Shown: positions 5,077 through 34,212 of the stretch, piece by piece
How the letters are laid out: the number at the start of each line of letters is the position of its first letter
Position numbering within the stretch: the first letter of the stretch is position 1
From: Neoechinorhynchus agilis
Taxonomy: Eukaryota > Animalia > Acanthocephala
Reading direction: 5' to 3'
NCBI GenBank assembly: GCA_051530055.1
Contig: CM121343.1
Location: 6,294,389-6,358,388, forward strand
Length of the DNA: 64,000 bases
The notes under the pieces: model-generated
What the model saw: the letters and a program-made list of their open reading frames with translations, nothing else
What the model was told of the DNA's origin: nothing
Databases searched by the model: none
Translations under genes and position numbers: made by a program

Positions 5077-5373
5077 GAAAAAATGTTTCCGGTCACCGAG
5101 TTTACTGATTTTTGCCATTTGAGTAGCCTGTTTTGTACCGGTTTTTGGGGATTTGCTGTTTAATGTTTTAAGTAAGCGCGGTCGTATATCAGCCGTTGAT
5201 CGTTTTGCAGCATCGTGTATGTTATATAGATCGTTGCGTTTTTTCAACCCTTTGGATGCAGGATCTTCCACTCAAATTCATAACGATTTTGTTCAATAAT
5301 CGTTAAAAAATAAGAAAATGGTGTTTTACGCTAAGTTTGTTTTTAAGACTCATGATTTGAGAATTCTCAAAAT

Positions 5374-7367
5374 TCAAGAAGGATTATGTAAACACGTTTT
5401 ATTAATGTAAGAAAAGCACGATCCACACACTTGCCAGCATCTATCTTTGCTGAAGGTGTCTGGATGACGGATGTTGAAGGCAAGGGAGGTGGGACTTGTC
5501 TTTGAAGGAGTGTTAATGTGCGATCGGAGGCTTTGTACAGGAGATGACCGATTAGGAGTCTTTCCTTGTTCTCCGGTTATTAAGGAAAGATTGGGCTTGG
5601 GGGAGGAAAGATTTTTGGTAGAGGGAGGTACGAGCGAGGGGGGATGAAAACGGGTGTTTACGAGGGAAGAGTATTTAGAGATGAAGGAAGAAAATCGTGG
5701 AGTGGGTAGAAGACGGAGGGCGTTTTTGGAGAAAATGGAGTGGAGGTGGACGTCGAGGGGAGGGAGTGAAGTTCCGCATATTCTCGCTGCTCTCTTGTGG
5801 AAGGTCTCGAAGGAATGGAGAGCATTGGGGGAGAGGGCGAGGAAAGCGGGGAAAGCGTATGTAAGGATAGGAAGGATGGCAGAGAGATAAAAGTGAGCAA
5901 GGTATTTAGGGAATACGCCGTGACGCCGGAGGAGTTTGCGAAGGTAAAGACGAGGGTTTGCTTTAGAGAATGTAAATGAAATGTGGGCATTCCATTTAAG
6001 GTTTTCTTGTAAAATCACGCCCAGAATTCGGAGAGAAGAGGAGCGTTGGATGGGTAGAGGGAGAAGCGCGGGGAGAAGATTGCGTTTGGAAATGTGGGGG
6101 GCAAGCTCAAAAGATTTGGATAAATTTAGGGAGAGGTTTAGGGTGGAGAGCGAGGAAATGAGATGGTTGAGCTCGTCCATGGTTGTGGAGAGGGAGGGAG
6201 ATGCGATGGTAATGACTGTGAGGTCATCTGCATAAAGAAAATATTTGGTAGTGGGAGTGAGGGGATGAAGGTCATTTAGAAAAATGTCAAAGAGGAGAGG
6301 GGAAAGTACGGCGCCTTGGGGGACCCCTTTTAAATATGGGCAGAGAGGAAGAACATGAAGCTCCACATTGGATATATTGTTCGCGGTTGGAGGAAAGAGG
6401 AAATCCAAGCGAGTTGCCAGGTTTGGAGGCCAAAGGAAGCACATGATTGGAGGAGAAGGGAGTGATCTACCGACTCGAACGCCCTGGAAATATCCAGTTG
6501 CACGAGACGGACGGTTGATGCTGGACTGGAATCTAAGCTGCGCACAAGCGTATCGTAGATGCAGAGGAGGGCATCAGAACAATAGTAATTGGGACGGAAA
6601 GCGAATTGGGAAGGGGAGATGTTTTTGAGGAAGAAGGGAAGTAGGCGGGTTTTAAAACATTTTTCTAAGATTTTAGAGAAAGGTGAGAGGATAGAGATGG
6701 GACGAAAGGATGTGGGGAAATCCGTTTATTGTTTTTGGTTAGGGGGACGACCCGCGCTTCCTTAAGACACGATGAGAAAGAGCCCAATAGAAAGCTAAGG
6801 TTCGTTATGCGCGTTAGAGGATCGATAAGTTCCGGGATGATGAAACGAATGGCCCAATTTGGGATAGTCGAATTAGGGGAAGAATGGCGGGACAGGCGTT
6901 TAAGGATCTCTAAGATTTCGAGAGGGGAAACTATGGAAGGGCACGTATGAATGGGCGGGTCAGAAAGTGAGAACGGAGGTTGGGACAATAGATGGGAGGT
7001 TTGGGGAGGACAGAGGTTTTTATTCATGGTGTTAAGGATTGAGAGGAGATGGGATTTAAGGAGAGACGCGAAGGAGGTGGAGCTACCAAGACCAGTGACA
7101 TTTTTTATTTCACGCCACCAGTTTAGATTGGGAACGGACGAGAGACGAGATGATAGGAATAATTTGCGGGCTATACGGATGCGTTTTGTCAGTTTGGAGT
7201 AGAGGGAAGGGTAAGCAGGATTACCTGGCCGCAAAGCCTTGGTGACCTGGATTTGAAGGGTTTTTAGAAAAGGCGAGAACCATGGAGGATCGCGGTTCGA
7301 TATTCGTATTGTTTTGCAAGGAAAGGAGGTCTTCATCGCAGATTCTATTAGATTTAACAAAGAGCCC
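5374..7367 (-). mobile_element. 5'-truncated, frameshifted LINE (CR1/L2 group) ORF2 fragment, copy 1
   Basis: DPPWF..LK linker, LKEARVVPL.K, LDISRAFESVDH, GVPQGAVLSPLLF, YADD and LGV.L...LKWNAHI...KAN.RLY.LRKL, spread over three frames. No APE domain. AATAAA lies about 25 nt from the 3' end. Confidence 0.9.
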
Positions 7368-10300
7368 AACTCCGGATCCGTCATCCACACCAGATCCGCC
7401 ATCCACTCCGGATCCGTCATATACGCCGGATCCGTCAGCCACACCGGATCCCCCATCCACTCCGGATCCGTCATATACTCCGGATCCGTCATCCACACCT
7501 AATCCGCCACCCACACCAGATCCGTCATCCACACCGGATCCCCATCCACTCCAGATCCGTCATATACGCCGGATCCGTCATCCACACCTAATCCGCCACC
7601 TACACCAGATCCGCCATCCACTCCGGATCCGTCATATACGTCGGATCCGTCACCCACACCGGATCCGTCATCCACACAGGATCCGTCATCCACTCCGGAT
7701 CCGTCATATACGCCGGATCCGTCATATACGAGGGATACGTCATCCACACAGGATCCGTCATCCACAACGGATCCGTCATATACGCCGGATCCGTCATCCA
7801 CTTCGGATCTGCCATCCACACAGGATCCGCCATCCACTCCGGATCCGTCATATAAGCCGGATCCGTCATCCGCACCAGATCCGTCATCCACACCTAATCA
7901 GCCACCCACACCAGATCCGTCATCCACACAGGATCCGTCATATACGCCGGATCCGTCATCTACACCAGATCCGTCATCCACACCTAATCCGCCACCCACA
8001 CCAGATCCGTCATCCACACCGGATCCCCCATCCACTCCGGATCCGTCATATACGCCGGATCCGTCATCCACACCTAATCCGCCACCTACACCGGATCCGT
8101 CATCCACTCCGATCCGTCATATACCCGGATCCGTCATATACGCCGGATCCGTCATCTACACCAGATCCGTCATCCACTCCGGATCCGTCATATACGCCGG
8201 ATCCTTCATCCACACCGGATCCGTCATCCACTCCGCATCCGTCATCCACACCTAATCCGCCACCCACACCAGATCCGCCATCAACTCCGGATACGTCATA
8301 TACGCCGGATCCGTCTTCTACACCAGATTCGTCATCCACTCCGGTTCCGTCATATACGCCGGATCCGTCATCCACACCTAATCCGCCACCTGTTGTGGTT
8401 TTGTTCACCCAGATCCGCCATCAACTCGGTCGTCATATACGCCGGATCCGTCTTCTACACCAGATTCGTCATCCACTCCGGTTCCGTCATATACGCCGGA
8501 TCCGTCATCCACACCTAATCCGCCACCCACGCCAGATCCGTCATCCACTCCGGATCCGTTATATACGCCGGATCCGTCATCAACACCTAATCCGCCATCC
8601 ACTCCGGATCCGTCGTATACGCCGGATCCGCCATCCACACCGGATCAGTCATATACGCCGAATCCGTCATCCACACCGGATCCGTTATCCACTCCGGGTC
8701 CGTCATATACGCCGGATCCATCATCCACACCGGATCCGCCATCCACTCCGGATCCGTCATTCACACCGGATCCGCCTTCCACTCCGGATCCGTCATATAC
8801 GCCGGATCCTTCATCCACACCGGATCCGTCATTCACACCGGATCCGCCTTCTACTCCGGATCCGTCATATACGCCGGATCCGCCATCCACTCCGGATCCG
8901 TCATCCATTCCGGATCCGTCATATACGCCGGATCCTTCATCCACACCGGATCCGTCATCCACTCCGGATCCGTCATATACGCCGGATCCGTCATCTACAC
9001 CAGATCCGTCATCCACTCCGGATCCGCCATATACGCCGGATCCGTCATCCACACCGGATCCGTCACCCACACCGGATCCGTCATCCATACAGGATCCGTC
9101 ATCCACTCCGGATCCGTCATATACGCCGGATCCGTCATATACGAGGGATACGTCATCCACACATGATCCGTCATCCACACAGGATCCGTCATCCACTCCG
9201 GATCCGCCATCAATTCCGGATCCGTTATATACGCCGGATTCGTCATCCACGACGGATCCGTAATATACGCCGGATCCGTCATCCACTTTGGATCTGTCAT
9301 CCACACACGATCCGTCATCCACTCCGGATCCGTCATATACGCCGGATCCGTCATCCACACCGGATCCGTCATATACGCCGGATCCGTCATCCACATCAGA
9401 TCCGTCATCCACACAGGATCCGTCATATACGCCGGATCCGTCATCTACACCCGATCCGTCATCCACACCTAATCCGCCACCCACACCAGATCCGTCATCC
9501 ACACCGGATCCCCAATCCACTCCGGATCCGTCATCCACACCTAATCCGCCACCAACACCAGATCCGTCATCCACACCGGATCCCCCATCCACTCCTGATC
9601 CGTCATATACGCCGGATCCGTCATCCACACCTAATCCGCCACCTACACCAGATCCGCCATCCACCCGGATCCGTCATATACGCCGGATCCGTCATCTACA
9701 CCAGATCCGTCATCCACACAGGATCCGTCATATACGCCGGATCCGTCATCTACACCCGATCCGTCATCCACTCCGGATCCGTCATATACGCCGGATCCGT
9801 CATCTACACGGGATCCGCCATCCACTCTGGATCCGCCATCAACTCTGGATCGGCCATCCACTCCTTATCAGTCAACGCCGTATCCGTCATCCACACCAGA
9901 TCCGTCATCCACTCCGGATCCGTCGTCCACTCCGGATCCGTCATCCACACCTAATCCGCCACCCACACCAGATCCGTCATCCACACCGGATCCCCCATCC
10001 ACTCCGGATCCGTCATATACGCCGGATCCGTCATCCACACCTAATCCGTCATCCACACCTAATCCGCCACCCACACCAGATCCGTCATCCACTCCGGATC
10101 CGTCATATACGCCGGATCCGTCATCTACACCAGATCCGCCATCCACTCCGGATCCGTCATATACGCCGGATCCGTCATCCACACCAGATCCGTCATATAC
10201 GCCAGATCCGTCATCAACACCGGATCCGTCATCCACTCCGGATCCGTCATATACGCCGAATCCGTCATCCACTCCGGATCCGTCATCCACACCTAATCCG

Positions 10301-13300
10301 CCACCCACACCAGATCCGCCATCAACTCCGGATCCGTCATATACGCCGGATCCGTCATCTACACCAGATCCGTCATCCACACCGGATCCGTCATATACGC
10401 CGGATCCGTCATCCACTCCGGATCTGTCATCCACACACGATCCGTCATCCACTCCGGATCCGTCATATACGCCGGATCCGTCATCCACACCGGATCCGTC
10501 ATATACGCCGGATCCGTCATCTACACCCGATCCGTCATCCACACCTAATCCGCCACCCACACCAGATCCGTCATCCACACCGGATCCCCCATCCACTCCG
10601 GATCCGTCATCCACACCTAATCCGCCACCAACACCAGATCCGTCATCCACACCGGATCCCCCATCCACTCCGGATCCGTCATATACGCCGGATCCGTCAT
10701 CCACACCTAATCCGCCACCTACACCAGATCCGCCATCCACCCGGATCCGTCATATACGCCGGATCCGTCATCTACACCAGATCCGTCATCCACACAGGAT
10801 CCGTCATATACGCCGGATCCGTCATCTACACCCGATCCGTCATCCACTCCGGATCCGTCATATACGCCGGATCCGTCATCTACACGGGATCGGCCATCCA
10901 CTCTGGATCCGCCATCAACTCTGGATCGGCCATCCACTCCTTATCAGTCAACGCCGTATCCGTCATCCACACCAGATCCGTCATCCACTCCGGATCCGTC
11001 GTCCACTCCGGATCCGTCATCCACACCTAATCCGCCACCCACACCAGATCCGTCATCCACACCGGATCCCCCATCCACTCCGGATCCGTCATATACGCCG
11101 GATCCGCCATCCACACCTAATCCGTCATCCACACCTAATCCGCCACCCACACCAGATCCGCCATCCACTCCGGATCCGTCATATACGCCCGATCCGTCAT
11201 CTACACCAAATCCGTCATCCACTCCGGATAGGTCATATACGCCGGATCCGTCATCCACACCAGATCCGTCATATACGCCAGATCCGTCATCAACACCGGA
11301 TCCGTCATCCACTCCGGATCCGTCATATACGCCGAATCCGTCATCCACTCCGCATCCGTCATCCACACCATCCGCCACCACCCAGATCCGCCATCAACTC
11401 CGGATCCGTCATATACGCCGGATCCGTCATCTACACCAGATTCGTCATCCACTTCGGTTCCGTCATATACGCCGGATCCGTCATCCACACCTAATCCGCC
11501 ACCCACGCCAGATCCGCCATCAACTCCGGATCCGTCATATACGCCGGATCCGTCGTCTACACCAGATTCGTCATCCACTTCGGTTCCGTCATATACGCCG
11601 GATCCGTCATCCACACCTAATCCGCCACCCACGCCAGATCCGTCATCCACTCCGGATCCGTTATATACGCCGGATCCGTCATCTACACCTAATCCGCCAC
11701 CCACACCAGATCCGCCATCCACTCCGGATCCGTCGTATACGCCGGATCCGCCATCCACACCGGATCAGTCATATACGCCGAATCCGTCATCCACACCGGA
11801 TCCGTTATCCACTCCGGGCCCGTCATATACGCCGGATCCATCATCCACACCGGATCCGCCATCCACTCCGGATCCGTCATTCACACGGGATCCGCCTTCT
11901 ACTCCGGATCCGTCATGTACGCCGGATCCGCCATCCACTCCGGATCCGTCATCCATTCCGGATCCGTCATTCACTCCGGATCCGTCATCCACTCCGGATC
12001 CGTCATATACGCCGGATCCGTCATCTACACCAGATCCGTCATCCACACCGGATCCGTCATATACGCCGGATCCTTCATCCACACCGGATCCGTCATTCAC
12101 ACCGGATCCGCCTTCTACTCCGGATCCGTCATATACGCCGGATCCGCCATCCACTCCGGATCCGTCATATACTCCGGATCCGTCATATACGCCGGATCCT
12201 TCATCCACACCGGATCCGTCATCCACTCCGCATCCGTCATCCACACCTAATCCGCCACCCACACCAGATCCGCCATCAACTCCGGATCCGTCATATACGC
12301 CGGATCCGTCTTCTACACCAGATTCGTCATCCACTCCGGTTCCGTCATATACGCCGGATCCGTCATCCACACCGGATCCGTCATATACGCCGGATCCGTC
12401 ATCCACTCCGGATCTGTCATCCACACACGATCCGTCATCCACTCCTGATGTCTACGCCAGATCCGTCATCCACACCAGGTCCGTCATCCACTCCGGGTCC
12501 GTCATATACGCCGGATTCATCATCCACACCGGATCCGTCATCCACACAGGATCCGTCATCCACACCGGATCCGCCATCCACTCCGGATCCGTCATGTACG
12601 CCGGATCCGTCATCCACACCGGATCCGTCATCCACCCCGGATCCGTCATATACGCCGGATCCGTCATCCACATCAGATCCGTCATTCACCGGATCCGTCA
12701 TATACGCCGGATCCGTCATCTACACCAGATCCGTCATCACTCCGGATCCGTCAATACGCCGGATCGTCATCCACACCTAATCCGCCACCCACACCATGCA
12801 TCACTCCGTCCTATACGCCGGATCCGTCATCCACACAGGATCCGTCATCCACACCGGATCCGCCATCCACTCCGGATCCGTCATGTACGCCGGATCCGTC
12901 ATCCACACCGGATCCGTCATCCACCCCGGATCCGTCATATACGCCGGATCCGTCATCCACATCGATCCGTCATCCACACAGGATCCGTCATATACGCCGG
13001 ATCCGTCATCTACACCGGATCCGTCATCTACTCCGGATCCGTCATATACGCCGGATCCGTCATCCACACCTAATCCGCCACCCACACCAGATCCGCCATC
13101 AACTCCGGTTCCGTCATATACGCCGGATCCGTCATCCACACCTAATCCGCCACCCACACCAATCCGCCATCAACTCCGTCCGTCATATACGCCGGATCCG
13201 TCATCCACACAGGATCCGTCATCCACCCGGATCCGCCATCCACTCCGGATCCGTCATGTACGCCGGATCCGTCATCCACACCGGATCCGTCATCCACCCC

Positions 13301-15750
13301 GGATCCGTCATATACGCCGGATCCGTCATCCACACCAGATCCGTCATCCACACAGGATCCGTCATATACGCCGGATCCGTCATCTACACCAGATCCGTCA
13401 TCTACTCCGGATCCATCATATACGCCGGATGCGTCATCCACACCTAATCCGCCACCCACACCAGATCCGCCATCAACTCCGGTTCCGTCATTACGCGGAT
13501 CCGTCATCTACACCAGATTCGTCATCCACTCCGGATCCGTCATCCACTCCCGGATCCGTCATATACGCCGGATCCGTCATCCACACCGGATCCGTCATAT
13601 CCGTCATCACACCGGATCCCACTCCGGATCCGTCATATACGCCGGATCCGTCATCCACACCTAATCCGTCATCCACACGATCCGCATCACTCCGTGTCTA
13701 CGCCGATCCGTCATCCACACTAATCCGCCACCCACACCAGATCCGTCATCCACTCCGGATCCGTCATATACGCCGGATCCGTCATCTACACCAGATCCGT
13801 CATACACGCCGGATCCGTCATCCACACCTAATCCGCCACCCACACCAGATCCGCCATCCACTCCGGATCCGTCATATACGCGGACCGTCATACCGATCGT
13901 CTCCGGATCTCATACGCCGGATCCGTCATCCACACCTAATCCGCCACCCACACCAGATCCGTCATCCACTCCGGATCCGTCATCCACACCTGATCCGTCA
14001 CCCACACCAGATCCGCCATCAACTCCGGATCCGTCATATACGCCGGATCCGTCATCTACACCAGATCCGTCATCCACTCCGGTCCTCAATACGCCGGATC
14101 CGTCATCCACACCTAATCCGCCACCCACACCAGATCCGCCATCAACTCCGGTTCCGTCATATACGCCGGATCCGTCATCCACACCTAATCCGCCACCCAC
14201 ACCACATCCGCCATCAACTCCGGATCCGTCATATACGCCGGATCCGTCATCCACACAGGATCCGCCATCCACTCCGGATCCGTCATGTACGCCGGATCCG
14301 TCATCCACACCGGATCCGTCATCCACCCCGGATCCGTCATATACGCCGGATCCGTCATCCACATCAGATCCGTCATCCACACAGGATCCGTCATATACGC
14401 CGGATCCGTCATCTACAGCAGATCCGTCATCTACTCCGGATCCATCATATACGCCGGATGCGTCATCCACACCTAATCCGCCACCCACACCAGATCCGCC
14501 ATCAACTCCGGTTCCGTCATATACGCCGAATCCGTCATCTACACCAGATTCGTCATCCACTCCGGATCCGTCATCCACTCCGGATCCGTCATATACGCCG
14601 GATCCGTCATCTACACCAGATCCGTCATCCACTCCGGATAGGTCATATACGCCGGATCCGTCATCCACACCTAATCCGCCACCCACACCAGATCCGCCAT
14701 CAACTCCGGTTCCGTCATATACGCCGGATCCGTCATCCACACCTAATCCGCCACCCACACCAGATCCGCCATCAACTCCGGATCCGTCATATACGCCGGA
14801 TCCGTCATCTACACCAGATCCGTCATGCACTCCGGATAGGTCATATATGACCGATCCGTCATCCACACCTAATCCGCCACCCACACTAGATCCACCATCC
14901 ACTCCGGATCCGTCATATACGCTGGATCCGTCATCTACACCAGATCCGTCATCCACTCGGATCCGTCATTACGTCGGATCCGTCATCCACACCTAATCCG
15001 CCACCCACCAGATCCACCATCCACTCCGGATCCGTCATATACGCTGGATCCGTCATCTACCCAGATCCGTCATCCACTCCGGATCGTCATATACGGGATC
15101 GTCATCCACCGGATCCGCCACCCACACGATCCGCATCCACTCCGGATCGTCATTACGCGGATCCGTTTCCGTGTTCCACCCGGATCCGTCATATACGTCG
15201 GATCCGTCATCCACACCTAATCGGCCACCCACACCAGATCCACCATCCACTCCGGATCCATCATATACGCTGGATCCGTCATCTACACCAGATCCGTCAT
15301 GCACTCCGGATAGGTCATATATGCCCGATTCGTCATCCACACCTAATCCGCCACCCACACTAGATCCACCATCCACTCCGGATCCGTCATATACGCTGGA
15401 TCCGTCATCTACACCAGATCCGTCATCCACTCCGGATCCGTCATATACGTCGGATCCGTCATCCACACCTAATCCGCCACCCACACTAGATCCACCATCC
15501 ACTCCGGATCCGTCATATACGCTGGATCCGTCATCTACACCAGATCCGTCATCCACTCCGGATCCGTCATATACGAGGGATACGTCATCCACACAGGATC
15601 CGTACCACTCCGGGGCCGTCATATACGCCGGATCCGTCATCCACGCCGGATCTGTCATCCACACACGATCCGTCATATACGCCGGATCCGTCATCCACAC
15701 CGGATCCGTCATCCACTCCGGATCCGTCATCCACACCTAATCCGCCACCC
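7368..15750 (+). repeat. 18-bp tandem repeat array (ccg gat ccg tca tcc/tat acN; cct aat ccg cca ccc aca), roughly 460 units, with higher-order structure
   Basis: Read directly. Most units contain GGATCC or a 1-2 nt variant. A diagnostic block recurs at a 1076-bp period (9868 vs 10944). Confidence 0.97.
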
Positions 15751-16251
15751 TCATCGTGTGGTTCAACATCAACCTCTTCAACACAGCTAACGTCAATAAC
15801 TGCGCGAAATAGGCGACGCAAGGAAAAGAAAAAAGAGAAAATGAGAAAGCGCCTAACTAATTTGATGGAAGGATCAAAATTTGAGGATATTGCTATCGTT
15901 ACTGGTCCTATTTATGATTGTCTGGTGAAAATTGATAATATTGCTAAGAGTAGCCGCTTACTTTGCGAACTATTGAGCGTCTTCTGGTGCAACGATGAAG
16001 CTGTGGGTCTTTTGGAAGAAAGTATGGCGAGTCTTCGAATTTTAGCTCTTTCCGTAGCTGAAAACGGTTGGATGATGGACACTGATGAACAAAACGAAGA
16101 CGAACTTGCACGAATTAGCGAAGATTCCATAATACAAATGGCTAGAAGGAAAATGCTTCTTGATTTTTATAGCCATTTAAGGTTTATTGATCCTACTCGA
16201 AGATTTCCTCGTTTGATTAATCAAACAAGCAACGTTGTTATTTTAAAATAA
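15751..16251 (+). pseudogene. ELP1: Duplicated 3' fragment of ELP1 (promoterless)
   Basis: Matches 4576-5076 and is fused directly to the end of array 1. Confidence 0.85.
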
Positions 16252-16548
16252 GAAAAAATGTTTCCGGTCACCGAGTTTACTGATTTTTGCCATTTGAGTA
16301 GCCTGTTTTGTACCGGTTTTTGGGGATTTGCTGTTTAATGTTTTAAGTAAGCGCGGTCGTATATCAGCCGTTGATCGTTTTGCAGCATCGTGTATGTTAT
16401 ATAGATCGTTGCGTTTTTTCAACCCTTTGGATGCAGGATCTTCCACTCAAATTCATAACGATTTTGTTCAATAATCGTTAAAAAATAAGAAAATGGTGTT
16501 TTACGCTAAGTTTGTTTTTAAGACTCATGATTTGAGAATTCTCAAAAT

Positions 16549-18554
16549 TCAAGAAGGATTATGTAAACACGTTTTATTAATGTAAGAAAAGCACGATCCA
16601 CACACTTGCCCGCATCTATTTTTGCTGAAGGTGTCTGGATGACGGATGTTGAAAGCAAGGGAGGTGGGACTTGTCTTTGAAGGAGTTTTAATGTGCGATC
16701 GAAGGCTTTGTACAGGAGATGACCGATTGGGAGCCTTTCCTTGTTCTCCGGTTATTAAGGAAAGATTGGGCTTGGGGGAAGAAAGATTTTTGGTAGAGGA
16801 TGGTACGAGCGAGGGGGGATGAAAAAGGTTGCGGTTACGGGTGTTTACGAAGGAAGAGTATTTAGAGATGAAGGAAGAAAATCGTGGAGTGGGTAGAAGA
16901 CGGAGGGCGTTTTTGGAGAAAATGGAGTGGAGGTGGACGTCGAGGGGAGGGAGTGAAGTTCCGCATATTCTCGCTGCTCTCTTGTGGAAGGTCTCGAAGG
17001 AATGGAGAGCATTGGGGGAGAGGGCGAGGAAAGCGGGGAAAGCGTATGTAAGGATAGGAAGGATGGCAGAGAGATAAAAGTGAGCAAGGTATTTAGGGAA
17101 TACGCCGTGACGCCGGAGGAGTTTGCGAAGGTAAAGACGAGGGTTTGCTTTAGAGAATGTAAATGAAATGTGGGCATTCCATTTAAGGTTTTCTTGTAAA
17201 ATCACGCCCAGAATTCGGAGAGAAGAGGAGCGTTGGATGGGTAGAGGGAGAAGCGCGGGGAGAAGATTGCGTTTGGAAATGTGGGGGGCAAGCTCAAAAG
17301 ATTTGGATAAATTTAGGGAGAGGTTTAGGGTGGAGAGCGAGGAAATGAGATGGTTGAGCTCGTCCATGGTTGTGGAGAGGGAGGGAGATGCGATGGTAAT
17401 GACTGTGAGGTCATCTGCATAAAGAAAATATTTGGTAGTGGGAGTGAGGGGATGAAGGTCATTTAGAAAAATGTCAAAGAGGAGAGGGGAAAGTACGGCG
17501 CCTTGGGGGACCCCTTTTAAATATGGGCAGAGAGGAAGAACATGAAGCTCCACATTGGATATATTGTTCGCGGTTGGAGGAAAGAGGAAATCCAAGCGAG
17601 TTGCCAGGTTTGGAGGCCAAAGGAAGCACATGATTGGAGGAGAAGGGAGTGATCGACCGACTCGAACGCCCTGGAAATATCCAGTTGCACGAGACGGACG
17701 GTTGATGCTGGACTGGAATCTAAGCTGCGCACAAGCGTATCGTAGATGCAGAGGAGGGCATCAGAACAAGAGTAATTGGGACGGAAAGCGAATTGGGAAG
17801 GGGAGATGTTTTTGAGGAAGAAGGGAAGTAGGCGGGTTTTAAAACATTTTTCTAAGATTTTAGAGAAAGGTGAGAGGATAGAGATGGGACGAAAGGATGT
17901 GGGGAAATCCGTTTATTGTTTTTGGTTAGGGGGACGACCCGCGCTTCTTTAAGACACGATGAGAAAGAGCCCAATAGAAAGCTAAGGTTCGTTATGCGCG
18001 TTAGAGGATCGATAAGTTCCGGGATGATGAAACGAATGACCCAATTTGGTATAGTCGAATTAGGGGAAGAATGGCGGGACAGGCGTTTAAGGATCTCTAA
18101 GATTTCGAGAGGGGAAACTATGGAAGGGCACGTATGAATGGGCGGGTCAGAAAGTGAGAACGGAGGTTGGGACAATAGATGGGAGGTTTGGGGAGGACAG
18201 AGGTTTTTATTCATGGTGTTAAGGATTGAGAGGAGATGGGATTTAAGGAGAGACGCGAAGGAGGTGGAGCTACCAAGACCAGTGACATTTTTTATTTCAC
18301 GCCACCAGTTTAGATTGGGAACGGACGAGAGACGAGATGATAGGAATAATTTGCGGGCTATACGGATGCGTTTTGTCAGTTTGGAGTAGAGGGAAGGGTA
18401 AGCAGGATTACCTGGCCGCAAAGCCTTGGTGACCTGGATTTGAAGGGTTTTTAGAAAAGGCGAGAACCATGGAGGATCGCGGTTCGATATTCGTATTGTT
18501 TTGCAAGGAAAGGAGGTCTTCATCGCAGATTCTATTAGATTTAACAAAGAGCCC
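16549..18554 (-). mobile_element. 5'-truncated, frameshifted LINE (CR1/L2 group), copy 2
   Basis: Near-identical to 5374-7367, with the same RT motifs and frameshifts. Confidence 0.9.
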
Positions 18555-21500
18555 AACTCCGGATCCGTCATCCACACCAGATCCGCCATCCACTCCGGAT
18601 CCGTCATATACGCCGGATCCGTCAGCCACACCGGATCCCCCATCCACTCCGGATCCGTCATATACTCCGGATCCGTCATCCACACCTAATCCGCCACCCA
18701 CACCAGATCCGTCATCCACACCGGATCCCCATCCACTCCAGATCCGTCATATACGCCGGATCCGTCATCCACACCTAATCCGCCACCTACACCAGATCCG
18801 CCATCCACTCCGGATCCGTCATATACGTCGGATCCGTCACCCACACCGGATCCGTCATCCACACAGGATCCGTCATCCACTCCGGATCCGTCATATACGC
18901 CGGATCCGTCATATACGAGGGATACGTCATCCACACAGGATCCGTCATCCACAACGGATCCGTCATATACGCCGGATCCGTCATCCACTTCGGATCTGTC
19001 ATCCACACAGGATCCGCCATCCACTCCGGATCCGTCATATACGCCGGATCCGTCATCCGCACCAGATCCGTCATCCACACCTAATCAGCCACCCACACCA
19101 GATCCGTCATCCACACCGGATCCGTCATATACGCCGGATCCGTCATCTACACCAGATCCGTCATCCACACCTAATCCGCCACCCACACCAGATCCGTCAT
19201 CCACACCGGATCCCCCATCCACTCCGGATCCGTCATATACGCCGGATCCGTCATCCACACCTAATCCGCCACCTACACCGGATCCGTCATCCACTCCGGA
19301 TCCGTCATATACGCCGGATCCGTCATCTACACCAGATCCGTCATCCACTCCGGATCCGTCATATACGCCGGATCCTTCATCCACACCGGATCCGTCATCC
19401 ACTCCGCATCCGTCATCCACACCTAATCCGCCACCCACACCAGATCCGCCATCAACTCCGGATCCGTCATATACGCCGGATCCGTCTTCTACACCAGATT
19501 CGTCATCCACTCCGGTTCCGTCATATACGCCGGATCCGTCATCCACACCTAATCCGCCACCCACGCCAGATCCGTCATCCACTCCGGATCCGTTATATAC
19601 GCCGGATCCGTCATCAACACCTAATCCGCCATCCACTCCGGATCCGTCGTATACGCCGGATCCGCCATCCACACCGGATCAGTCATATACGCCGAATCCG
19701 TCATCCACACCGGATCCGTTATCCACTCCGGGTCCGTCATATACGCCGGATCCATCATCCACACCGGATCCGCCATCCACTCCGGATCCGTCATTCACAC
19801 CGGATCCGCCTTCCACTCCGGATCCGTCATATACGCCGGATCCTTCATCCACACCGGATCCGTCATACACCCGGATCCGTCATCCACTCCGATCCGTCAT
19901 TACGCCGGATCCGTCATCCACACCAGATCCGTCATCCACTCCGGATCCGTCATATACGCCGGATCTCATCCACACCGGATCCGTCATCCACACGGATCCG
20001 TCATCCACACCGGATCCGCCATCCACTCCGGATCCGTCATATACGCCGGATCCGTCATCCACACCGGATCCGTCATCCACTCCGGATCCGTCATATACGC
20101 CGGATCCGTCATCCACACCAGATCCGTCATCCACACCGGATCCGTCATCCACACCGGATCCGTCATCCACACCAGATCCGCATCACTCCGGATCCTCAAT
20201 ACCCGGATCGTCATCCACAACACCACCCGATCCCATCACCGGTCCCATATACGCCGGATCCGTCATCCACACCATCCGCACCACACCATCCGCATCACCC
20301 GGATCCGTCATATACGCCGGATCCGTCATCCACACAGGATCCGTCATCCACACCGGATCCGCCATCCACTCCGGATCCGTCATTACGCCGGATCCGTCAT
20401 CCACACCGGATCCGTCATCCACCCGGATCCGTCATATACGCCGGATCCGTCATCCACACAGATCCGTCATCCACACAGGATCCGTCATATACGCCGGATC
20501 CGTCATCTACACCGGATCCGTCATCACTCCGGATCCTCAACCCGATCGTCATCCACACCACCGCACCACACCGATCCGCATCCACTCCGGATCCGTCATA
20601 TACGCCGGATCCGTCATCCACACCTAATCCGCCACCCACACCAATCCGCATCACTCCGGTCCGTCATATACCCGGATCCGTCATCCACACAGGATCCGTC
20701 ATCCACTCCGGATCCGTCATATACGCCGGATCCGTCATCCACACCGGATCCGTCATCCACACCGGATCCGTCATCCACATCAGATCCGTCATCCACACAG
20801 GATCCGTCATATACGCCGGATCCGTCATCTACACAGATCCGTCATCTACTCCGGATCCATCAATACGCCGGATCCGTCATCCACACCTAATCCGCCACCC
20901 ACACCAGATCCGCCATCAACTCCGGATCCGTCATATACGCCGGATCCGTCATCTACACCAGATTCGTCATCCACTCCGGATCCGTCATCCACTCCGGATC
21001 CGTCATATACGCCGGATCCGTCATCTACACCAGATCCGTCATCCACTCCGGATCCGTCATATACGCCGGATCCGTCATCCACACCTAATCCGCCACCCAC
21101 ACCAGATCCGCCATCAACTCCGGTTCCGTCATATACGCCGGATCCGTCATCCACACCTAATCCGCCACCCACACCAGATCCGCCATCAACTCCGGATCCG
21201 TCATATACGCCGGATCCGTCATCTACACCAGATCCGTCATCCACTCCGGACATACCGATCCGTCATCCACACCTAATCCGCCACCCACACTAGATCCACC
21301 ATCCACTCCGGATCCGTCATATACGCCGGATCCGTCATCTACACCAGATCCGTCATCCACTCCGGATCCGTCATATACGTCGGATCCGTCATCCACACCT
21401 AATCCGCCACCCACACCAGATCCACCATCCACCCGGATCCTCATACGCGGATCCGTCATCTACACCAGATCCGTCATGCACTCCGGATAGGTCATATATG

Positions 21501-24500
21501 CCCGATCCGTCATCCACACCTAATCCGCCACCCACACTAGATCCACCATCCACTCCGGATCCGTCATATACGCTGGATCCGTCATCTACACCAGATCCGT
21601 CATCCACTCCGGATCCGTCATATACGTCGGATCCGTCATCCACACCTAATCCGCCACCCACACTAGATCCACCATCCACTCCGGATCCGTCATATACGCC
21701 GGATCCGTCATCTACACCAGATCCGTCATCCACTCCGGATCCGTCATATACGAGGGATACGTCATCCACACAGGATCCGTACCACTCCGGCCGTCATATA
21801 CGCCGGATCCGTCATCCACGCCGGATCTGTCATCCACACACGATCCGTCATATACGCCGGATCCGTCATCCACACCGGATCCGTCATCCACTCCGGATCC
21901 GTCATCCACACCTAATCCGCCACCCACACCAGATCCGTCATCCACACCTAATCCGCCACCCACACCCGATCCGCCATCAACTCCGGATCCGTCATATACG
22001 CCGGATCCGTCATCCACGCCTAATCCGCCACCCACACCAGATCGTCATCCACTCCGGATCCGTCATATACGCCGGATCCGTCATCACACCAGATCCGTCA
22101 TCCACCCGCATCCGTCATCCACACCTAATCCGCCACACACACCAGATCCGCCATCCACTCCGGATCCGTCATATACGCCGGATCCGTCATCTACACCAGA
22201 TCCGCCATCACACCGGATCCGTCATCCACACCGGATCCGCCATCCACTCCGGATCCGTCATTCACACCGGATCCGCCTTCCACTCCGATCCGTCATATAC
22301 GCCGATCCGTCATCTACACCAGACCGCCATCCACCGGATCAGTCATATACGCCGAATAGCCCATCCACACCGATCCGTTATCCACTCCGGATCCGTCATA
22401 TACGCCGAATCCATCATCCACACCGGATCTGTCATCTACACACGATCCGTCATCCACTCCGGATCCGTCATATACGCCGGATCCGTCATCCACACCTTAT
22501 CCGTCATATACGCCGGATCCGTCATCCACATCAGATCCGTCATCCACACAGGATCCGTCATATACGCCGGATCCGTCATCTACACCCGATCCGTCATCCA
22601 CACCTAATCCGCCACCCACACCAGATCCGTCATCCACACCGGATCCCCCATCCACTCCGGATCCGTCATCCACACCTAATCCGCCACCAACACCAGATCC
22701 GTCATCAACACCGGATCCTTCATCCACTCCGGATCCGTCATATACGCCGGATCCGTCATCCACACCTAATCCGCCTCCTACACCAGATCCGCCATCCACC
22801 CGGATCCGTCATATACGCCGGATCCGTCATCTACACCAGATCCGTCATCCACACAGGATCCGTCATATACGCCGGATCCGTCATCTACACCCGATCCGTC
22901 ATCCACTCCGGATCCGTCATATACGCCGGATCCGTCATCTAAACGGGATCGGCCATCCACTCTGGATCCGCCATCAACTCTGGATCGGCCATCCACTCCT
23001 TATCAGTCAACGCCGTATCCGTCATCCACACCAGATCCGTCATCCACTCCGGATCCGTCGTCCACTCCGGATCCGTCATCCACACCTAATCCGCCACCCA
23101 CACCAGATCCGTCATCCACACCGGATCCCCCATCCACTCCGGATCCGTCATATACGCCGGATCCGCCATCCACACCTAATCCGTCATCCACACCTAATCC
23201 GCCACCCACACCAGATCCGTCATCCACTCCGGATCGGTCATATACGCCGGATCCGTCATCTACACCAGATCCGCCTTCCACTCCGGATCCGTCATATACG
23301 CCCGATCCGTCATCTACACCAAATCCGTCATCCACTCCGGATAGGTCATATACGCCGGATCCGTCATCCACACCAGATCCGTCATATACGCCAGATCCGT
23401 CATCAACACCGGATCCGTCATCCACTCCGGATCCGTCATATACGCCGAATCCGTCATCCACTCCGCATCCGTCATCCACACCAGATCCGCCATCAACTCC
23501 GGATCCGTCATATACGCCGGATCCGTCGTCTACACCATATTCGTCATCCACTTCGGTTCCGTCATATACGCCGGATCCGTCATCTACACCTAATCCGCCA
23601 CCCACACCAGATCCGCCATCCACTCCGGATCCGTCGTATACGCCGGATCCGCCATCCACACCGGATCAGTCATATACGCCGAATCCGTCATCCACACCGG
23701 ATCCGTTATCCACTCCGGGCCCGTCATATACGCCGGATCCATCATCCACACCGGATCCGCCATCCACTCAGGATCCGTCATTCACACGGGATCCGCCTTC
23801 TACTCCGGATCCGTCATGTACGCCGGATCCGCCATCCACTCCGGATCCGTTATCCATTCCGGATCCGTCATTCACACCGGATCCTTCATCCACACCGGAT
23901 CCGTCATTCACACCGGATCCGCCTTCTACTCCGGATCCGTCATATACGCCGGATCCGCCATCCACTCCGGATCCGTCATATACGCGGGATCCTTCATCCA
24001 CACCGGATCCGTCATCCACTCCGGATCCGTCATATACGCCGGATCCGTCATCTACACCAGATCCGTCATCCACTCCGGATCCGTCATATACGCCGGATCC
24101 TTCATCCACACCGGATCCGTCATCCACTCCGCATCCGTCATCCACACCTAATCCGCCACCCACACCAGATCCGCCATCAACTCCGGATCCGTCATATACG
24201 CCGGATCCGTCTTCTACACCAGATTCGTCATCCACTCCGGTTCCGTCATATACGCCGGATCCGTCATCCACTCCGGATCCGTCATCCACTCCGGATCCGT
24301 CATATACGCCGGATCCGTCATCCACACCTGATCCGTCATATACGCCGGATCCGTCATCCACACCAGATCCGTCATCCACACAGGATCCGTCATATACGCC
24401 GGATCCGTCATCTACACCCGATCCGTCATCCACACCTAATCCGCCACCCACACCAGATCCGTCATCCACACCGGATCCGCCATCCACTCCGGATCCGCCA

Positions 24501-27210
24501 TCCACTCTGGATCCGCCATCAACTCTGGATCGGCCATCCACTCCTTATCAGTCAACGCCGTATCCGTCATCCACACCAGATCCGTCATCCACTCCGGATC
24601 CGTCATCCACTCCGGATCCGTCATCCACACCTAATCCGCCACCCACACCAGATCCGTCATCCACTCCGGATCCCCCATCCACTCCGGATCCGTCATATAC
24701 GCCGGATCCGCCATCCACACCTAATCCGTCATCCACACCTAATCCGCCACCCACACCAGATCCGTCATCCACTCCGGATCCGTCATATACGCCGGATCCG
24801 TCATCTACACCAAATCCGTCATCCACTCCGGATCGGTCATATACGCCGGATCCGTCATCCACACCAGATCCGTCATATACGCCAGATCCGTCATCAACAC
24901 CGGATCCGTCATCCACTCCGGATCCGTCATATACGCCGGATCCGCCATCCACACCGGATCAGTCATATACGCCGAATCCGTCATCCACACCGGATCCGTC
25001 ATCCACTCCGGATCCGTCATATACGCCGGATCCGTCATCCACACCGGATCCGCCATCCACTCCGGATCCGTCATTCACACCGGATCCGCCATCCACTCCG
25101 GATCCGTCATCCACACCGGATCCGTCATCCACTCCGGATCCGTCATATACGCCGGATCCGTCATCCACACCGGATCCGTCACCCACACCGGATCCGTCAT
25201 CCACACAGGATCCGTCATCCACTCCGGATCCGTCATATACGCCGGATCCGTCATATACGAGGGATCCGTCATCCACACAGGATCCGTCATCCACACAGGA
25301 TCCGTCATCCACTCCGGATCCGCCATCAATTCCGGATCCGTTATATACGCCGGATTCGTCATCCACAACGGATCCGTCATATACGCCGGATCCGTCATCC
25401 ACTTCGGATCTGTCATCCACACAGGATCCGCCATCCACTCCGGATCCGTCATATACGCCGGATCCGTCATCCACTCCGGATCCGTCATATACGTCGGATC
25501 CGTCATCCACACCGGATCCGTCAACCACTCCGGATCCGTCATATACGCCTGATCCGTCATCCACACCGAATCTGTCATCCACACACGATCCGTCATCCAC
25601 TCCTGATATGTCTACGCCAGATCCGTCATCCACACTAGGTCCGTCATCCACACCGGATCCGTCATCCACTCCGGGTCCGTCATATACGCCGGATCCATCA
25701 TCCACACCGTATCTGTCATCCACACACGATCCGTCATCCACTCCGTATCCGCCATCCACTCCGGATCCGTCATGTACGCCGGATCCGTCATCCACACCGG
25801 ATCCGTCATCCACCCCGGATCCGTCATAAACCCCGGATCCGTCATATACGCCGGATCCGTCATATACGCCGGATCCGTCATCCACACCAGATCCGTCATC
25901 CACACAGGATCCGTCATATACGCCGGATCCGTCATCTACTCCGGATCCATCATATACGCCGGATCCGTCATCCACACCTAATCCGCCACCCACACCAGAT
26001 CCGCCATCAACTCCGGATCCGTCATATACGCCGGATCCGTCATCTACACCAGATCCGTCATCCACTCCGGATCCGTCATCCACTCCGGATCCGTCATATA
26101 CGCCCGATCCGTCATCCACTCCGGATCCGTCATCCACACTGATCCGCCATTCACCGGATCCGTCATATGCCGGATCCGCCATCCACTCCGGATCCGTCAT
26201 ATACGCCGGATCCGTCATCCACACCGGATCCGTCATCCACACCGGATCCGTCATCCACACCGGATCCGTCATCCACACCGGATCCGCCATCCACTCCGGA
26301 TCCGTCATACGCCGGATCCGCCATCCACACCGGATCCGTCATCCACTCCGGATCCGTCATATACGCCGGATCCGTCATCCACACCGGATCCGTCATCCAC
26401 ACCGGATCCGTCATCCACTCCGGATCCGTCATATACGCCGGATCCGTCATCCACACCGGATCCGTCATCCACTCCGGATCCGTCATATACGCCGGATCCG
26501 TCATCCACACCAGATCCGTCATCCACTCCGGATCCGTCATATACGCCGGATCCGTCATCCACTCCGGATCCGTCATATACTCCGGATCCGTCATCCACAC
26601 CTAATCCGCCACCCACACCAGATCCGTCATCCACACCGGATCCCCATCCACTCCAGATCCGTCATATACGCCGGATCCGTCATCCCCACCTAATCCGCTA
26701 CCTACACCAGATCCGTCATTCACACCGGATCCGCCTTCCACTCCGGATCCGTCATCCACTCCGGATCCGTCATATACGCCGGATCCGTCATCCACACCGG
26801 ATCCCCCATCCACTCCGGATGCGTCATATACTCCGGATCCGTCATCCACACCTAATCCGCCACCCACACCAGATCCGTCATCCACACCGGATCCCCATCC
26901 ACTCCAGATCCGTCATATACGCCGGATCCGTCATCCCCACCTAATCCGCTACCTACACCAGATCCGCCATCCACTCCGGATCCGTCATATACGCCGGATC
27001 CGTCATCTACACCAGATCCATCATCCACACAGGATCCGTCATCCACTCCGGATCCGTCATATAAGCCGGATCCGTCATCTACACAGGATCCGTCATCCAC
27101 TCCGGATACGTCATGCACTCCGGATCCGTCATGTACGCTGGATCCTTCATCCACTCCGGATCCGCCACCCACACCAGATCCGTCATCCACTCCGGATCCG
27201 TCATCAACTC
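18555..27210 (+). repeat. 18-bp tandem repeat array, copy 2, roughly 480 units
   Basis: Same units as array 1. Colinear with it at the start, then rearranged. The PDPSST frame ends ...SSTLK-TGA (27216-27218), and AATAAA follows at 27260-27265. Confidence 0.97.
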
Positions 27211-27860
27211 TAAAGTGATCAAGGCGACCCAGAGGTATGTGGGTCCTCTTCTTAAACAAAATAAATCAAACGTGTTGTTGAATGTACACTTTAGCTTTTG
27301 AAATTGGAACTCAGCACCTATCGCTTTCATCTTCTATACCTTCCATTCAAATTGTGCATGTCGAAAAAGTCTTGAAAATACAGACTCGTATCCACTTTCA
27401 TATCAGAATTTGTGACTAAGATTATCACTATTGAGTATCGATCATAGAGTTGCTCAGCCGGCGTGATCATTGTGTAATCTGCGCTTTTATTGCATTCTCT
27501 TGCATTATACTGCAAGACTTTGGATTTTGTTTCAAGGAAAAAAGTTCAGAAAGTTGCGCATCATAAGTTCATATCCAATCCACCGAATTTGAGCGATCCG
27601 TATTACAGAGAAAAAATATGCCTGGGAGCATCTTTGAATGAAAATGAAAACTTACACGGGATTTAAATCAGAGAATAAGAGTAATGGGGAAGATTTCCAA
27701 TTATAATCCCCACGTGAAAGGCATGAGTTATGTATACTAGACGGTCAGAAATCATTTCATGATTTTGGAATATATCATAATCATCCATGAATCGATGCCA
27801 TAAGACAACGAGAATTTGTGTTAAAAAATATGTGTAAGTTTGAAGAGTTACCCTTCTCAA
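27211..27860 (-). CDS. Possible unidentified gene fragments abutting the array
   Basis: Three short protein-like ORFs (27663-27860, 27327-27515, 27211-27330). Two overlap by ATGA, as a 1-nt indel would produce. No family recognised. Confidence 0.25.
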
Positions 27861-28100: not shown

Positions 28101-29163
28101 ATGCCTGGAAGCAATGAGTTGCAGGCGGAAAGAGTAGAATTGAATAAATGCCCTCGTTGTCATGAGCCAATATTTGAGGATGATATTCACTATCGAGTGT
28201 TTGACAATTTGTACCATATTGACTGCCTCAAATGTTCTGATTGTGAACTGTCACTTGTTAAGTCAGCTTGCTACTCCGATGAACATGGAGCTTTATTCTG
28301 TGAAGCGCATTACTTCGACAACCATGCTCCGAAGTGTCTCATTTGTAACAAAATGATTCTTAGTGTAGACTTGATCACTGTCCGAATAAACAGAGATTGC
28401 TTTCATATAGAATGTCTTCGTTGTAATGAATGTCAGCAACTCATCTGTCCAAATGATCCGATAAATCTGATCCGCGTTTGGGATACGGTAAACAGTGAAC
28501 GCAAATTCGTTCTATGTGACAATCATTATGTTGGCCGTCAGAATACGATGAACACTGCGAACAATGTAACTGGTGGATCGCATCCAAGAGTGATCGAAGG
28601 AATTACAAGAAATGTAGATGAGGCGGCCGGAATTAGATTGGTTCATGGATTTGCAATGTCTACTTCGAACGACACATTTACTCAATCCAATGAAGTGGAC
28701 TCAACTCCAACAATGGCAGACACTATCCCGAAAAGAAAATCTAGAACCATAATTTCAAAAAAACAACTCATGGTAATTTTTTTAACATTGTGAACTCTAA
28801 TGATTCTCATTTAGATTTTACAAAATTACTATAGCAGGCAGAAAAATCCTGATTATGAAGGAATCCAGTACCTATCTGGCCGTACGGAACTTCAGCCACG
28901 AGTCGTTAAGGTACACTTTAAGAATTTTAGATCTAAAAATTCAGGTTTTTAAATAGGTATGGTTTCAGAATAAGCGAGCTGCGGAACGTAGAGCACAGAC
29001 AAAGAGTGCTAACAATGCCAGCCAAGTGGGTGAGTATAGATCATCTAGGAGTGGAGATGACGATGAAGCTGCAAAAGTTATTCAAGAATTGCCCGATGTT
29101 ATAAATGAGTTCAGCTGCGCATATAAGTTAAAAGAAGATGATAAATTAAACTTCAATGAATAA
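28101..29163 (+). CDS. LIM-homeobox transcription factor (2 LIM domains + homeodomain), 3 exons
   Basis: Two C-x2-C..H..C..C..C..C..[HC] LIM domains. Splicing 28101-28772, 28815-28910 and 28957-29163 (GT-AG introns of 42 and 46 nt) gives KRKSRTIISKKQLMILQNYY...RTELQPRVVKVWFQNKRAAERR. Subfamily not assignable. Confidence 0.92.
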
Positions 29164-33037: not shown

Positions 33038-34212
33038 ATGAGTATGGAGAATGCAAGCGAAAAAAAGAATGCTGAAATTAAAATCGGGTTAGATTCCGCG
33101 AGATAACACCGACGGTTGAATTTTCACTAAAAACATTTTATAGAAAACTCGCATTGCCAACAGTTATTGGTTATGGAGTTCAGGAACCTGGACTCTCGGT
33201 AAAAAAGATGCACATAGGAAGGCGAATTCCAGATCCAATGGATGTTGGAATCCGCGTCCAGTTTTGTGGAATATCTTTGACCGACGTTAAAATGATGGAG
33301 AATGAATTTGGTAAATCCCAATATCCAATGATACCTGGTCATGAAATAACTGGCTTCGTGGTTGTAACTGGTAAGAAGGTGACTAGATTTCAAGTTGGCG
33401 ACAGGGTCGGAGTTGGATTTCTTGCCAACTCATGCAGAAAATGCCCCCCGTGTCTAACAAAAAGAGAACAATACTGTACTCGTGAGCTGTGGACGATTGG
33501 TTATAGTCCATTTTACGGTGGTGAAAACTATATAAAAGGAGGACTGTGTACCTACATCTCAGCTGATGAGCAATTTGTGTTTCACATACCTACGTTATTG
33601 CCAATGGAAATTGCAACGCCACTTTTAAGTTCTGGGGCTGAAGTTTATGCCCCATTAAAACAAGCTCGAATTTCATCACGGACTCGTGTAGCTGTCGTGG
33701 GTTTCATAGGCTCCGGTCATATAGCGATCATGATTGCAAAAGCAATGGGTGCAAAAGTCTGGCTCGTGGAGTCCGAAAAAGACATTGAAGTGGACGCAAA
33801 ATCATGTGGTGCTATTGGTTTCATTTTAGCAACGGATTCTGAGGCTATGAACAAACATAGCAATACGTTTGATATAGTCATGGATACAACCACCGGAAGG
33901 TTCGATTATAATGATCTACTGAGACTTTTGCGATGCGATGGAAAGTTACATGTTATCGGTATAAACGGCAAAATGATAAATATCGATATAAGCGAGCTCG
34001 TAACAAGGAGAATAAGTATTACCGTTTCCAGAAATGCGTGCCGCAGTGAGACCCAAGAAGTTCTCGATTTTTGTGCTATGCAAAGAATTAAGCCTAAACT
34101 TGAATTGACCAAGATCAATCATATAGATGAGGCGCTTGAAAAGCTTAAAACAAACAACGTACGTAACTCACTTGTTATCGATGTCGATTCTATGAGAGAT
34201 GATGAATTTTAA
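33038..34212 (+). CDS. Cinnamyl-alcohol-dehydrogenase (CAD/YahK)-family MDR Zn alcohol dehydrogenase-like protein
   Basis: PMIPGHEITG, GDRVGVG, CRKCPPC-x7-C structural Zn site, PLL..G..VY.PL, VAVVG..G.GH.A...AKAMGA. ATG at 33038 joins the long ORF in frame through a phase-2 GT-AG intron at 33088-33143. Confidence 0.9.

Follow-up and report, generated by a model that had tools for sequence, protein, structure and literature searches.

A duplicated 18-bp array with a protein-like reading frame in the acanthocephalan Neoechinorhynchus agilis is probably a hypervariable minisatellite

Is a long C-rich array of 18-bp repeats that reads in one frame as a Pro/Ser/Thr/Tyr-rich peptide part of a gene, or was it ever? 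The question is raised by a locus of Neoechinorhynchus agilis situated between the 3' end of the ELP1 gene and a LIM-homeobox gene, in a gene-dense metazoan region (assembly GCA_051530055.1, contig CM121343.1, positions 6,294,389 to 6,358,388 of the forward strand; this whole stretch of 64,000 nucleotides is called the window). A first-pass annotation had proposed that two arrays present here are, or descend from, a giant Pro/Ser/Thr/Tyr-rich protein read in the plus-strand frame PDPSST, and are not a neutral satellite. We observed that this frame is broken about 38 times, which counts against a present gene, and we keep descent from one as a possibility. With the already-polymorphic columns left aside, recent changes were spread evenly over the codon positions, the very pattern that the annotation had named as incompatible with its rejection of a neutral satellite. 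We infer that the locus as assembled is not a gene and now evolves neutrally, without frame or amino-acid constraint. The arrays are unlikely to code for protein today, and a coding origin is unproven; an array that never coded for protein is somewhat more likely than the relic of an exon. In our judgement, the region is probably a hypervariable 18-bp minisatellite that was duplicated and was never coding.

Tandem Repeats Finder reported a single 18-bp array (7372-27205; 1,104 copies; consensus CCGGATCCGTCATCCACA), which is broken at 15751-18554 by G-skewed sequence. The parts are as follows.

7372-15750, plus strand (C-rich): array 1, 469 units, 8,379 bp, about 18 net frameshift clusters
18559-27209, plus strand: array 2, 486 units, 8,651 bp, about 20 net frameshift clusters
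27216-27218, plus strand: TGA closing the PDPSST phase, 9 nt past the last unit; AATAAA at 27260-27265

Both arrays were aligned to the cyclic consensus, which gave 955 units (866 of them clean 18-mers). Across the arrays, 140 distinct unit types were found; the GC content is 57% and the GC skew about -0.45. In translation, the main units give PDPSYT (127 clean copies), PDPSST and PNPPPT, and the 18-bp units, the hexapeptides, the TGA at 27216 and the AATAAA at 27260 are all present as first described. The order of the unit types is irregular (with motifs such as sNpY and ssY), with a PDPSYT unit every 3-4 units. The arrays are mosaics of blocks of 0.15-1 kb, whose close copies (96-100% identity; 52 block pairs at ≥96%) recur at many offsets in the same array or in the other. 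Their first 733 nt differ at three sites and by no indel (99.6% identity), and beyond this point the in-register identity falls to only ∼83%. The end of array 1 (15180-15750) matches an internal part of array 2 (21362-21925). Head-to-tail 18-bp units, interspersed variants and duplication or exchange of blocks are features of minisatellites, and so is the lack of a reading-frame constraint described below, which is to be read with the possibility of assembly errors in mind. Array 2 also contains a degenerate patch (20180-20300), where the unit is shortened to ∼14 bp at 20267-20298 (CCACACCATCCGCA); it is indel-dense and may be poorly polished.

The two arrays belong to an 11.2-kb unit that is repeated in tandem, head to tail, and consists of part of the last exon of ELP1, a 5'-truncated antisense long interspersed nuclear element (LINE) and the array. 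The components outside the arrays are listed here, with their open reading frames (ORFs).

4576-7367: duplicated non-array flank, copy 1; 3' part of the ELP1 last exon, its 3' region and the LINE fragment
5374-7367, minus strand: 5'-truncated fragment of a non-long-terminal-repeat (LINE) retrotransposon, copy 1; ORFs 5374-6444 and 6665-7498
15751-16251, plus strand: duplicated ELP1 last-exon fragment directly after array 1; ILK end, stop at 16249-16251
16549-18554, minus strand: LINE fragment, copy 2, recognized by its identity to copy 1; ORFs 16549-17631 and 17852-18685

The flanks 4576-7367 and 15751-18554 are 99.0% identical, differing by 16 substitutions and one 12-bp indel, with zero 1-bp indels. 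The copied flank takes in the last 166 codons of the ELP1 terminal exon plus the 3' region. Twelve of the 17 differences, the 12-bp indel included, lie within ∼230 bp near the 3' end of the LINE fragment (5436-5664 versus 16611-16851), and the remaining 2.5 kb are nearly identical. The ORF at 5374-6444 carries a YADD motif and matches Pfam RVT_1 (E = 9e-12), and the truncated 5' end of the LINE adjoins the first repeat unit of the array. At the junction 15750/15751, a PNPPPT unit passes into the middle of the ELP1 exon (PNPPP, then SSCGSTSTSS...VVILK) with microhomology of at most 1 nt and with no N. The end of array 1 is in the PDPSST-phase frame with the last 166 ELP1 codons, forming a potential chimeric ORF (15738-16251); the odds of such an in-frame join are 1/3.

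Both arrays thus exist as the first-pass annotation had it, but they are paralogous copies. Because one tandem duplication made both, as judged from the 99.0% identical flanks, they are not independent witnesses to any coding signature. The second array copy would have arisen by tandem duplication of the ELP1 tail, the antisense LINE and the array. Growth and shuffling of the arrays via duplication of the 0.15-1 kb blocks, within and between them, can be read from the block pairs, and the processes underlying it are likely to be unequal exchange, replication slippage and short-tract conversion between units.

The reading frame is not maintained along either array. Alignment to the consensus required 158 small indel events that fall into 51 clusters, 38 of which shift the frame (array 1, 18; array 2, 20). 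The in-frame clusters (13 of 51) are near the one third expected by chance (P = 0.30), and the PDPSST phase is spread across all three genomic frames. Two stretches are particularly informative.

22800-26137: longest stretch without a net frameshift (3.3 kb); stops in PDPSST 1, in RIRHPH 1, in antisense VDDGSG 7
7536-7556, plus strand: -1 unit (C5 to C4), 170 nt into array 1; identical copies at 18723, 26638 and 26889

This recurrent -1 variant, the only frameshift mentioned in the first-pass annotation, was found at all four places. The first frameshift of each array is the C5-to-C4 change (7541 and 18728), 170 nt from the start in both cases and inside the 99.6% identical part; it is therefore older than the duplication. 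The C5 form appears correctly 13 times elsewhere in the arrays. Another -1 change (CCATCCA, then CCCGG; at 9664, 10740 and 22799) is common to three blocks that align gap-free over 0.8-0.9 kb. Between paralogous blocks, we counted 70 distinct indels, all of 1-2 nt and none a multiple of 3. The 15-nt unit cited earlier as a recurrent in-frame variant is indeed present at 9863, 10939, 22998 and 24543, but it represents a single event because the offsets of its copies (1076, 12059 and 1545) match block duplications. Neither the uninterrupted frame, with the caveat of a long-read assembly, nor the restriction of indels to multiples of 3 that characterize mucin-like Pro/Thr/Ser-rich (PTS) exons was seen. 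Several paralogous blocks are 99.6-100% identical and gap-free over 250-730 nt, with frameshifts inside them that are common to the paralogues. We concluded that the frameshifts include real, old ones and may also include artefacts.

We then consider the variation among units by codon position. The minor-allele fraction is highest at columns 18 (0.55), 15 (0.40) and 3 (0.29), which are third positions of PDPSST and account for 57% of the variation; columns 14, 10 and 4, at second and first positions, rank next. The third-position columns 6, 9 and 12 are among the least variable (0.003, 0.054 and 0.029), column 6 being the lowest of all. When the 18 column values were shuffled, P was 0.047 for the PDPSST phase and 0.14 for any phase. 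The earlier statement that variation concentrates at third codon positions therefore holds for columns 3, 15 and 18, but not for columns 6, 9 and 12. A strict higher-order repeat was considered as the source of the third-position pattern, and none was found in the unit order. CpG deamination as the cause of the CCG/CCA variation was ruled out, the observed/expected ratio of CpG being 1.13 outside and 1.56 inside the arrays.

To assess recent changes, we tallied the different variants that lie one step from any of the nine major unit types. These are distributed as 23, 27 and 29 over codon positions 1, 2 and 3. Of the 105 nonsynonymous transitions that could occur, 26 were seen, and of the 48 synonymous ones, 11. 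With each homologous column scored a single time, the differences between paralogous blocks came to 32, 32 and 60 for the three positions. This third-position excess lies wholly in the already-polymorphic columns 3, 15, 18 and 10 (the last a first position) and for the most part reflects the exchange of one common allele for another, the outcome that short-tract conversion would produce. When the seven polymorphic columns were excluded, the differences per site were 5.0, 5.0 and 5.7 (P = 0.91). The two-fold sites are invariant, with no GAC among 734 Asp codons, no TAC among 222 Tyr codons and no AAC among 94 Asn codons. CCG makes up 70% of the Pro codons of the arrays, compared to 13% in the genes of the window, where the GC content at third codon positions is 0.36.

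Stop codons were counted in the phase-tracked codons of the clean units and, separately, in six frameshift-free segments. The counts in the clean units are given below by frame.

PDPSST, plus strand: 2 stops in 5,196 codons
RIRHPH, plus strand: 8 stops in 5,137 codons
GSVIHT, plus strand: 94 stops in 5,137 codons
VDDGSG, minus strand: 10 stops in 5,137 codons

Stops number 171 and 709 in the two other frames of the minus strand. The frameshift-free segments contain 2 stops in PDPSST, 1 in RIRHPH and 15 in VDDGSG. The antisense VDDGSG stops listed in the first-pass annotation coincide with the ends of minus-strand ORFs, and its view that the plus strand is more open than the minus strand is borne out (2 stops in PDPSST versus 10 in VDDGSG); if any frame ever coded, it would be PDPSST, which has the fewest. 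The only PDPSST stop that it had noticed, the TAA at 25827-25829, is present, and the clean units hold 2, but these low counts are obtained only by re-phasing the frame by hand over the ∼38 clusters. The openness is largely compositional, because RIRHPH is nearly as open and the C-rich strand is seldom one step from a stop. Counted by event, none of the 16 possible stop-creating one-step variants was seen, compared to about 2 expected by our calculation. Conservation at column 11, where a TCA codon could turn into a stop, does not exceed that at column 17, where a change carries no such risk.

The anatomy of a gene is likewise missing around the arrays. Their 5' border is the antisense LINE, and there is no start or signal exon, as the first-pass annotation had already pointed out for the window. 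The sole ATG, at 7282, lies in LINE antisense and would give MEDRGSIFVLFCKERR, which is not a signal peptide. We found no trace of a 5' exon left of the LINE (5077-5373) and no non-repeat domains flanking the repeats, and the stop follows 9 nt after the array.

A 358-aa PDPSST translation gave only two chance matches, to Pro/Thr linkers, in a word-indexed set of 5.8 billion proteins. This set includes the annotated proteins of N. agilis, since it holds a 100% identical match to an exon of the dihydrolipoamide dehydrogenase (DLD) gene of the window, which lies 29 kb from the arrays; the absence of the array peptide from the annotation is weak evidence because RepeatMasker masking preceded BRAKER (PMC12690905). 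An exhaustive HMMER search with 1,009 aa returned 788 matches at E ≤0.001. The nine that we inspected have other repeat units (TPDPVTTQDPGA, PDKGET, DRSESP, PEPSSTATPA, TPYPTY and others), and among five that were looked up, those with names are one jellyfish and two bacterial proteins. PDPSST, PDPSYT, PNPPPT and PDPPST occur in none of the best 150 of the 788 matches. These matches are compositional and indicate no more than that proteins of a mucin-like, T-P-D-P type are plausible. In the 5.8-billion set and by HMMER, there was accordingly no homologous protein or annotated product for the array peptide, only compositional matches. The ELP1 terminal exon (4261-5076) also had no match in the 5.8-billion-protein set and is probably absent from, or modelled otherwise in, the GenBank annotation. 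Record look-ups for the ELP1 exon, the LIM exon, the LicD ORF, an 890-aa array ORF and the LINE ORF gave nothing. A literature search found no mention of PDPSST, PDPSYT, PNPPPT or TPDPSS, metagenome contigs scanned with a 30-mer of the array gave no match, and Rfam found nothing within the arrays. As excerpted here, a paper on the Acanthocephalus satellitome reports only long AT-rich satellites and mentions neither '18 bp' nor 'minisatellite'. RNA-seq from 74 N. agilis worms exists (PMC12690905).

Several points count against a minisatellite that never coded. The three most variable columns are all PDPSST third positions (P = 0.047, as given above), the unit length is a multiple of 3, C occupies 5 of the 6 second-codon bases (∼10% by chance, by our calculation), and a TGA and an AATAAA stand directly 3' of the array. 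PDPSST has 2 stops where a crude mutation model predicted 15; we judged this model unreliable because its C-to-A rate is driven by a few amplified variants. Among the variant types seen at least three times, a set chosen as robust to random error, 30 are synonymous and 43 nonsynonymous, compared to 29.6% synonymous expected (one-sided P = 0.024; omega ∼0.6), although the synonymous count is inflated because recombinants of old third-position alleles score as synonymous steps. Given the fewest stops, the mild synonymous excess, the 18-bp unit and the stop with AATAAA, descent from a Pro/Ser/Thr-rich exon is a possibility to be weighed. The arrays could be what is left, drifted and duplicated, of a mucin-like Pro/Ser/Thr/Tyr-rich terminal exon of a secreted-protein gene between ELP1 and the LIM-homeobox gene, with its 5' exon or exons lost, perhaps on the occasion of the LINE insertion. 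Real mucin-like T-P-D-P proteins exist, for example P0123 of Sanderia malayensis, which has a hydrophobic, signal-like N-terminus by our reading of its first 80 residues. We hold this origin to be possible and on balance doubtful, as every statistical signal for it is marginal (P = 0.02-0.14) and its features were picked post hoc, three third-position columns are among the most conserved, the two-fold sites never vary, CCG usage and GC content are unlike those of local genes, and neither a 5' exon trace at 5077-5373 nor a homologue was found. Coding on the minus strand, as a Gly/Asp/Ser-rich VDDGSG repeat, is hardly credible. The wobble columns of that frame are those of PDPSST, and no major unit type contains a stop in it, but it accumulates the 10 and 15 stops reported above against 2 for PDPSST, recurrent C-to-A variants (QDPS.., PDQS..) make TGA in it, and the same frameshifts hit it. 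If the array never coded, as we prefer, its protein-like look would come from the C-rich strand with C at most second-codon bases, the unit of 18 and the position of three old polymorphic columns in a single phase.

The remaining alternatives concern the assembly, which combined Illumina reads with Oxford Nanopore Technologies (ONT) R9.4 reads from ∼50 pooled worms in the hybrid mode of MaSuRCA, with Hi-C scaffolding, purge_dups and gap closing by TGS-GapCloser (PMC12690905). Each array could be the central exon of an intact giant gene for a ∼2,800-aa hexapeptide-repeat protein, its frameshifts being long-read consensus errors that short reads were unable to polish. The pooled reads, the hybrid assembly and the gap closing with raw long reads (PMC12690905) would favour such errors, and the indels themselves speak further against our own reading: relative to the consensus, single-base deletions exceed insertions by 120:11, about half of them in two-base runs, and the indels concentrate at 12.5-15.2 kb and 20.2-22.4 kb with none in 22800-26137. 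This excess and clustering looks in part like ONT consensus error. Such errors may therefore account for some of the frameshifts and some of the rare variants taken as 'neutral'. Against intact genes, error is low in the paralogous blocks that are 99.6-100% identical, yet these share frameshifts; there is not one 1-bp indel between the flank copies over 2.8 kb, the array has no start or signal peptide, its only ATG being that in LINE antisense, a TAA stands at 25827, and the protein set that holds the genome annotation contains no PDPSST-repeat protein (weak evidence, the repeats having been masked beforehand). We regard intact genes as improbable and retain a small chance for them because errors could dilute the rare-variant tests. 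Equally slim is the prospect that the arrays belong to two paralogous genes in tandem for a giant secreted protein specific to the acanthocephalan lineage, with ∼2,800 aa of P-D-P-S-[S/Y]-T each and a 5' exon beyond recognition here; such a protein would be O-glycosylated and/or Tyr-cross-linked and would belong to the tegument coat, the male cement or the egg envelope. A different doubt is whether the tandem duplication is itself false, the assembler or gap closer having set in succession two haplotypes of a hypervariable locus from the pooled sample. The pool of ∼50 worms, the use of purge_dups and TGS-GapCloser (PMC12690905), a flank divergence of 0.57% that fits the allelic range, and internal array structures that differ as minisatellite alleles do would all agree with this. 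The junction 15750/15751 is, on the other hand, a clean N-free non-homologous join that at least one read would need to span, and array 1 ends in sequence that recurs inside array 2 (21362-21925, 98.2%), as expected of a true duplication followed by exchange; we consider a false duplication unlikely, though a real enough risk to be kept in mind.

Human MS32 and CEB1 are hypervariable minisatellites (variable number tandem repeats; VNTRs) with interspersed variant repeats and units of 10-60 bp. The N. agilis arrays resemble VNTRs of this type in their head-to-tail short units, kb scale and strong G/C strand asymmetry, as well as in the irregular interspersion of variants, the duplication and exchange of blocks and the lack of frame constraint on recent change. 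The contrast in structure between the two copies also gives a hint, though no more, of the length and structure polymorphism typical of VNTRs. The arrays differ from most minisatellites in being larger (two of ∼8.5 kb) and in having a unit that is open in three of six frames. With mucin-type PTS exons they share Pro/Ser/Thr richness in one frame, a multiple-of-3 period, the kb scale and the T-P-D-P motif; unlike these, the array frame is not kept, signal peptide and non-repeat domains are lacking, and codon use is unlike that of the host genes. The nearest compositional match, S. malayensis P0123 with its TPDPVTTQDPGA repeats, is cnidarian, 45% identical and built of a different unit. Plant extensins and mussel foot protein 1 are Tyr-containing Pro-rich structural or adhesive repeat proteins. 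The periodic Tyr of the PDPSYT units in a short Pro-rich repeat might be likened to theirs, but the arrays have no sequence relationship to them and no SPPPP or 3,4-dihydroxyphenylalanine (DOPA)-type decapeptide motif. The parallel with Tyr cross-linking drawn earlier stands as far as the periodic Tyr goes, and is an analogy only, as had been stated when it was drawn. As in other tandem segmental duplications with a non-homologous junction, an 11.2-kb head-to-tail unit with microhomology of at most 1 nt is seen here; parts of the arrays have, in contrast, since been reshuffled between the copies.

The other features of the window are as follows.

11-5076, plus strand: ELP1 gene, several large exons, seen as ORFs
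4261-5076, plus strand: ELP1 last exon, stop at 5074-5076; Pfam HB_ELP1 on 4261-5073 (E = 2e-12)
28101-29163, plus strand: LIM-homeobox gene, downstream neighbour of the arrays; Pfam LIM (E = 1e-16)
33154-34212 and 36245-37305, plus strand: zinc-type alcohol dehydrogenase and LicD-family gene, each essentially a single ORF
47523-48248, minus strand: 241-aa protein, very Cys-rich by eye, annotated single-exon gene; contains GCGGCGGCG
48805-49366 (112 bp x5), 51417-52105 (354 bp x2) and 62564-63259 (230 bp x3): further tandem repeats, 96-98% matches
50447-50899 (minus strand), 53272-53910 (plus strand) and 54299-54736 (minus strand): ORFs resembling retroelement fragments, LWDATCVDTLAAS motif
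59773-59870, plus strand: full-length U6 small nuclear RNA gene (Rfam, 101 bits)

The LIM-homeobox gene has three exons and two introns of ∼45 nt each, as read from the sequence. By our reading, the N-terminus of the zinc-type alcohol dehydrogenase is cinnamyl-alcohol-dehydrogenase-like. Alcohol dehydrogenase and LicD-type genes of this kind are unusual in animals and are candidates for a horizontal origin; horizontal gene acquisition is known in rotifers, relatives of the acanthocephalans. The Cys-rich 241-aa protein had no Pfam match, and its gene holds a 9-bp coding repeat at 47675-47747. As acanthocephalans accumulate heavy metals, according to the genome paper (PMC12690905), a metal-binding role for this protein is a thought that could be entertained. 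The three further tandem repeats are AT-rich and bear no relation to the 18-bp array. The retroelement-like ORFs had no Pfam match either and are unrelated to the LINE beside the arrays.

The locus documents a large dynamic minisatellite and an 11.2-kb duplication that puts part of ELP1 in frame onto the array, in a newly sequenced member of a little-studied phylum, and it probably marks a place where the N. agilis assembly is weak. C-rich arrays of short units whose length is a multiple of 3 can mimic coding sequence, with open frames, apparent wobble and a mucin-like peptide, without the constraint of a gene, and such arrays call for phase-tracked indel tests and recent-mutation tests before gene calls are made. 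Were the genes intact after all, they would encode an unknown giant structural glycoprotein of a fish parasite.

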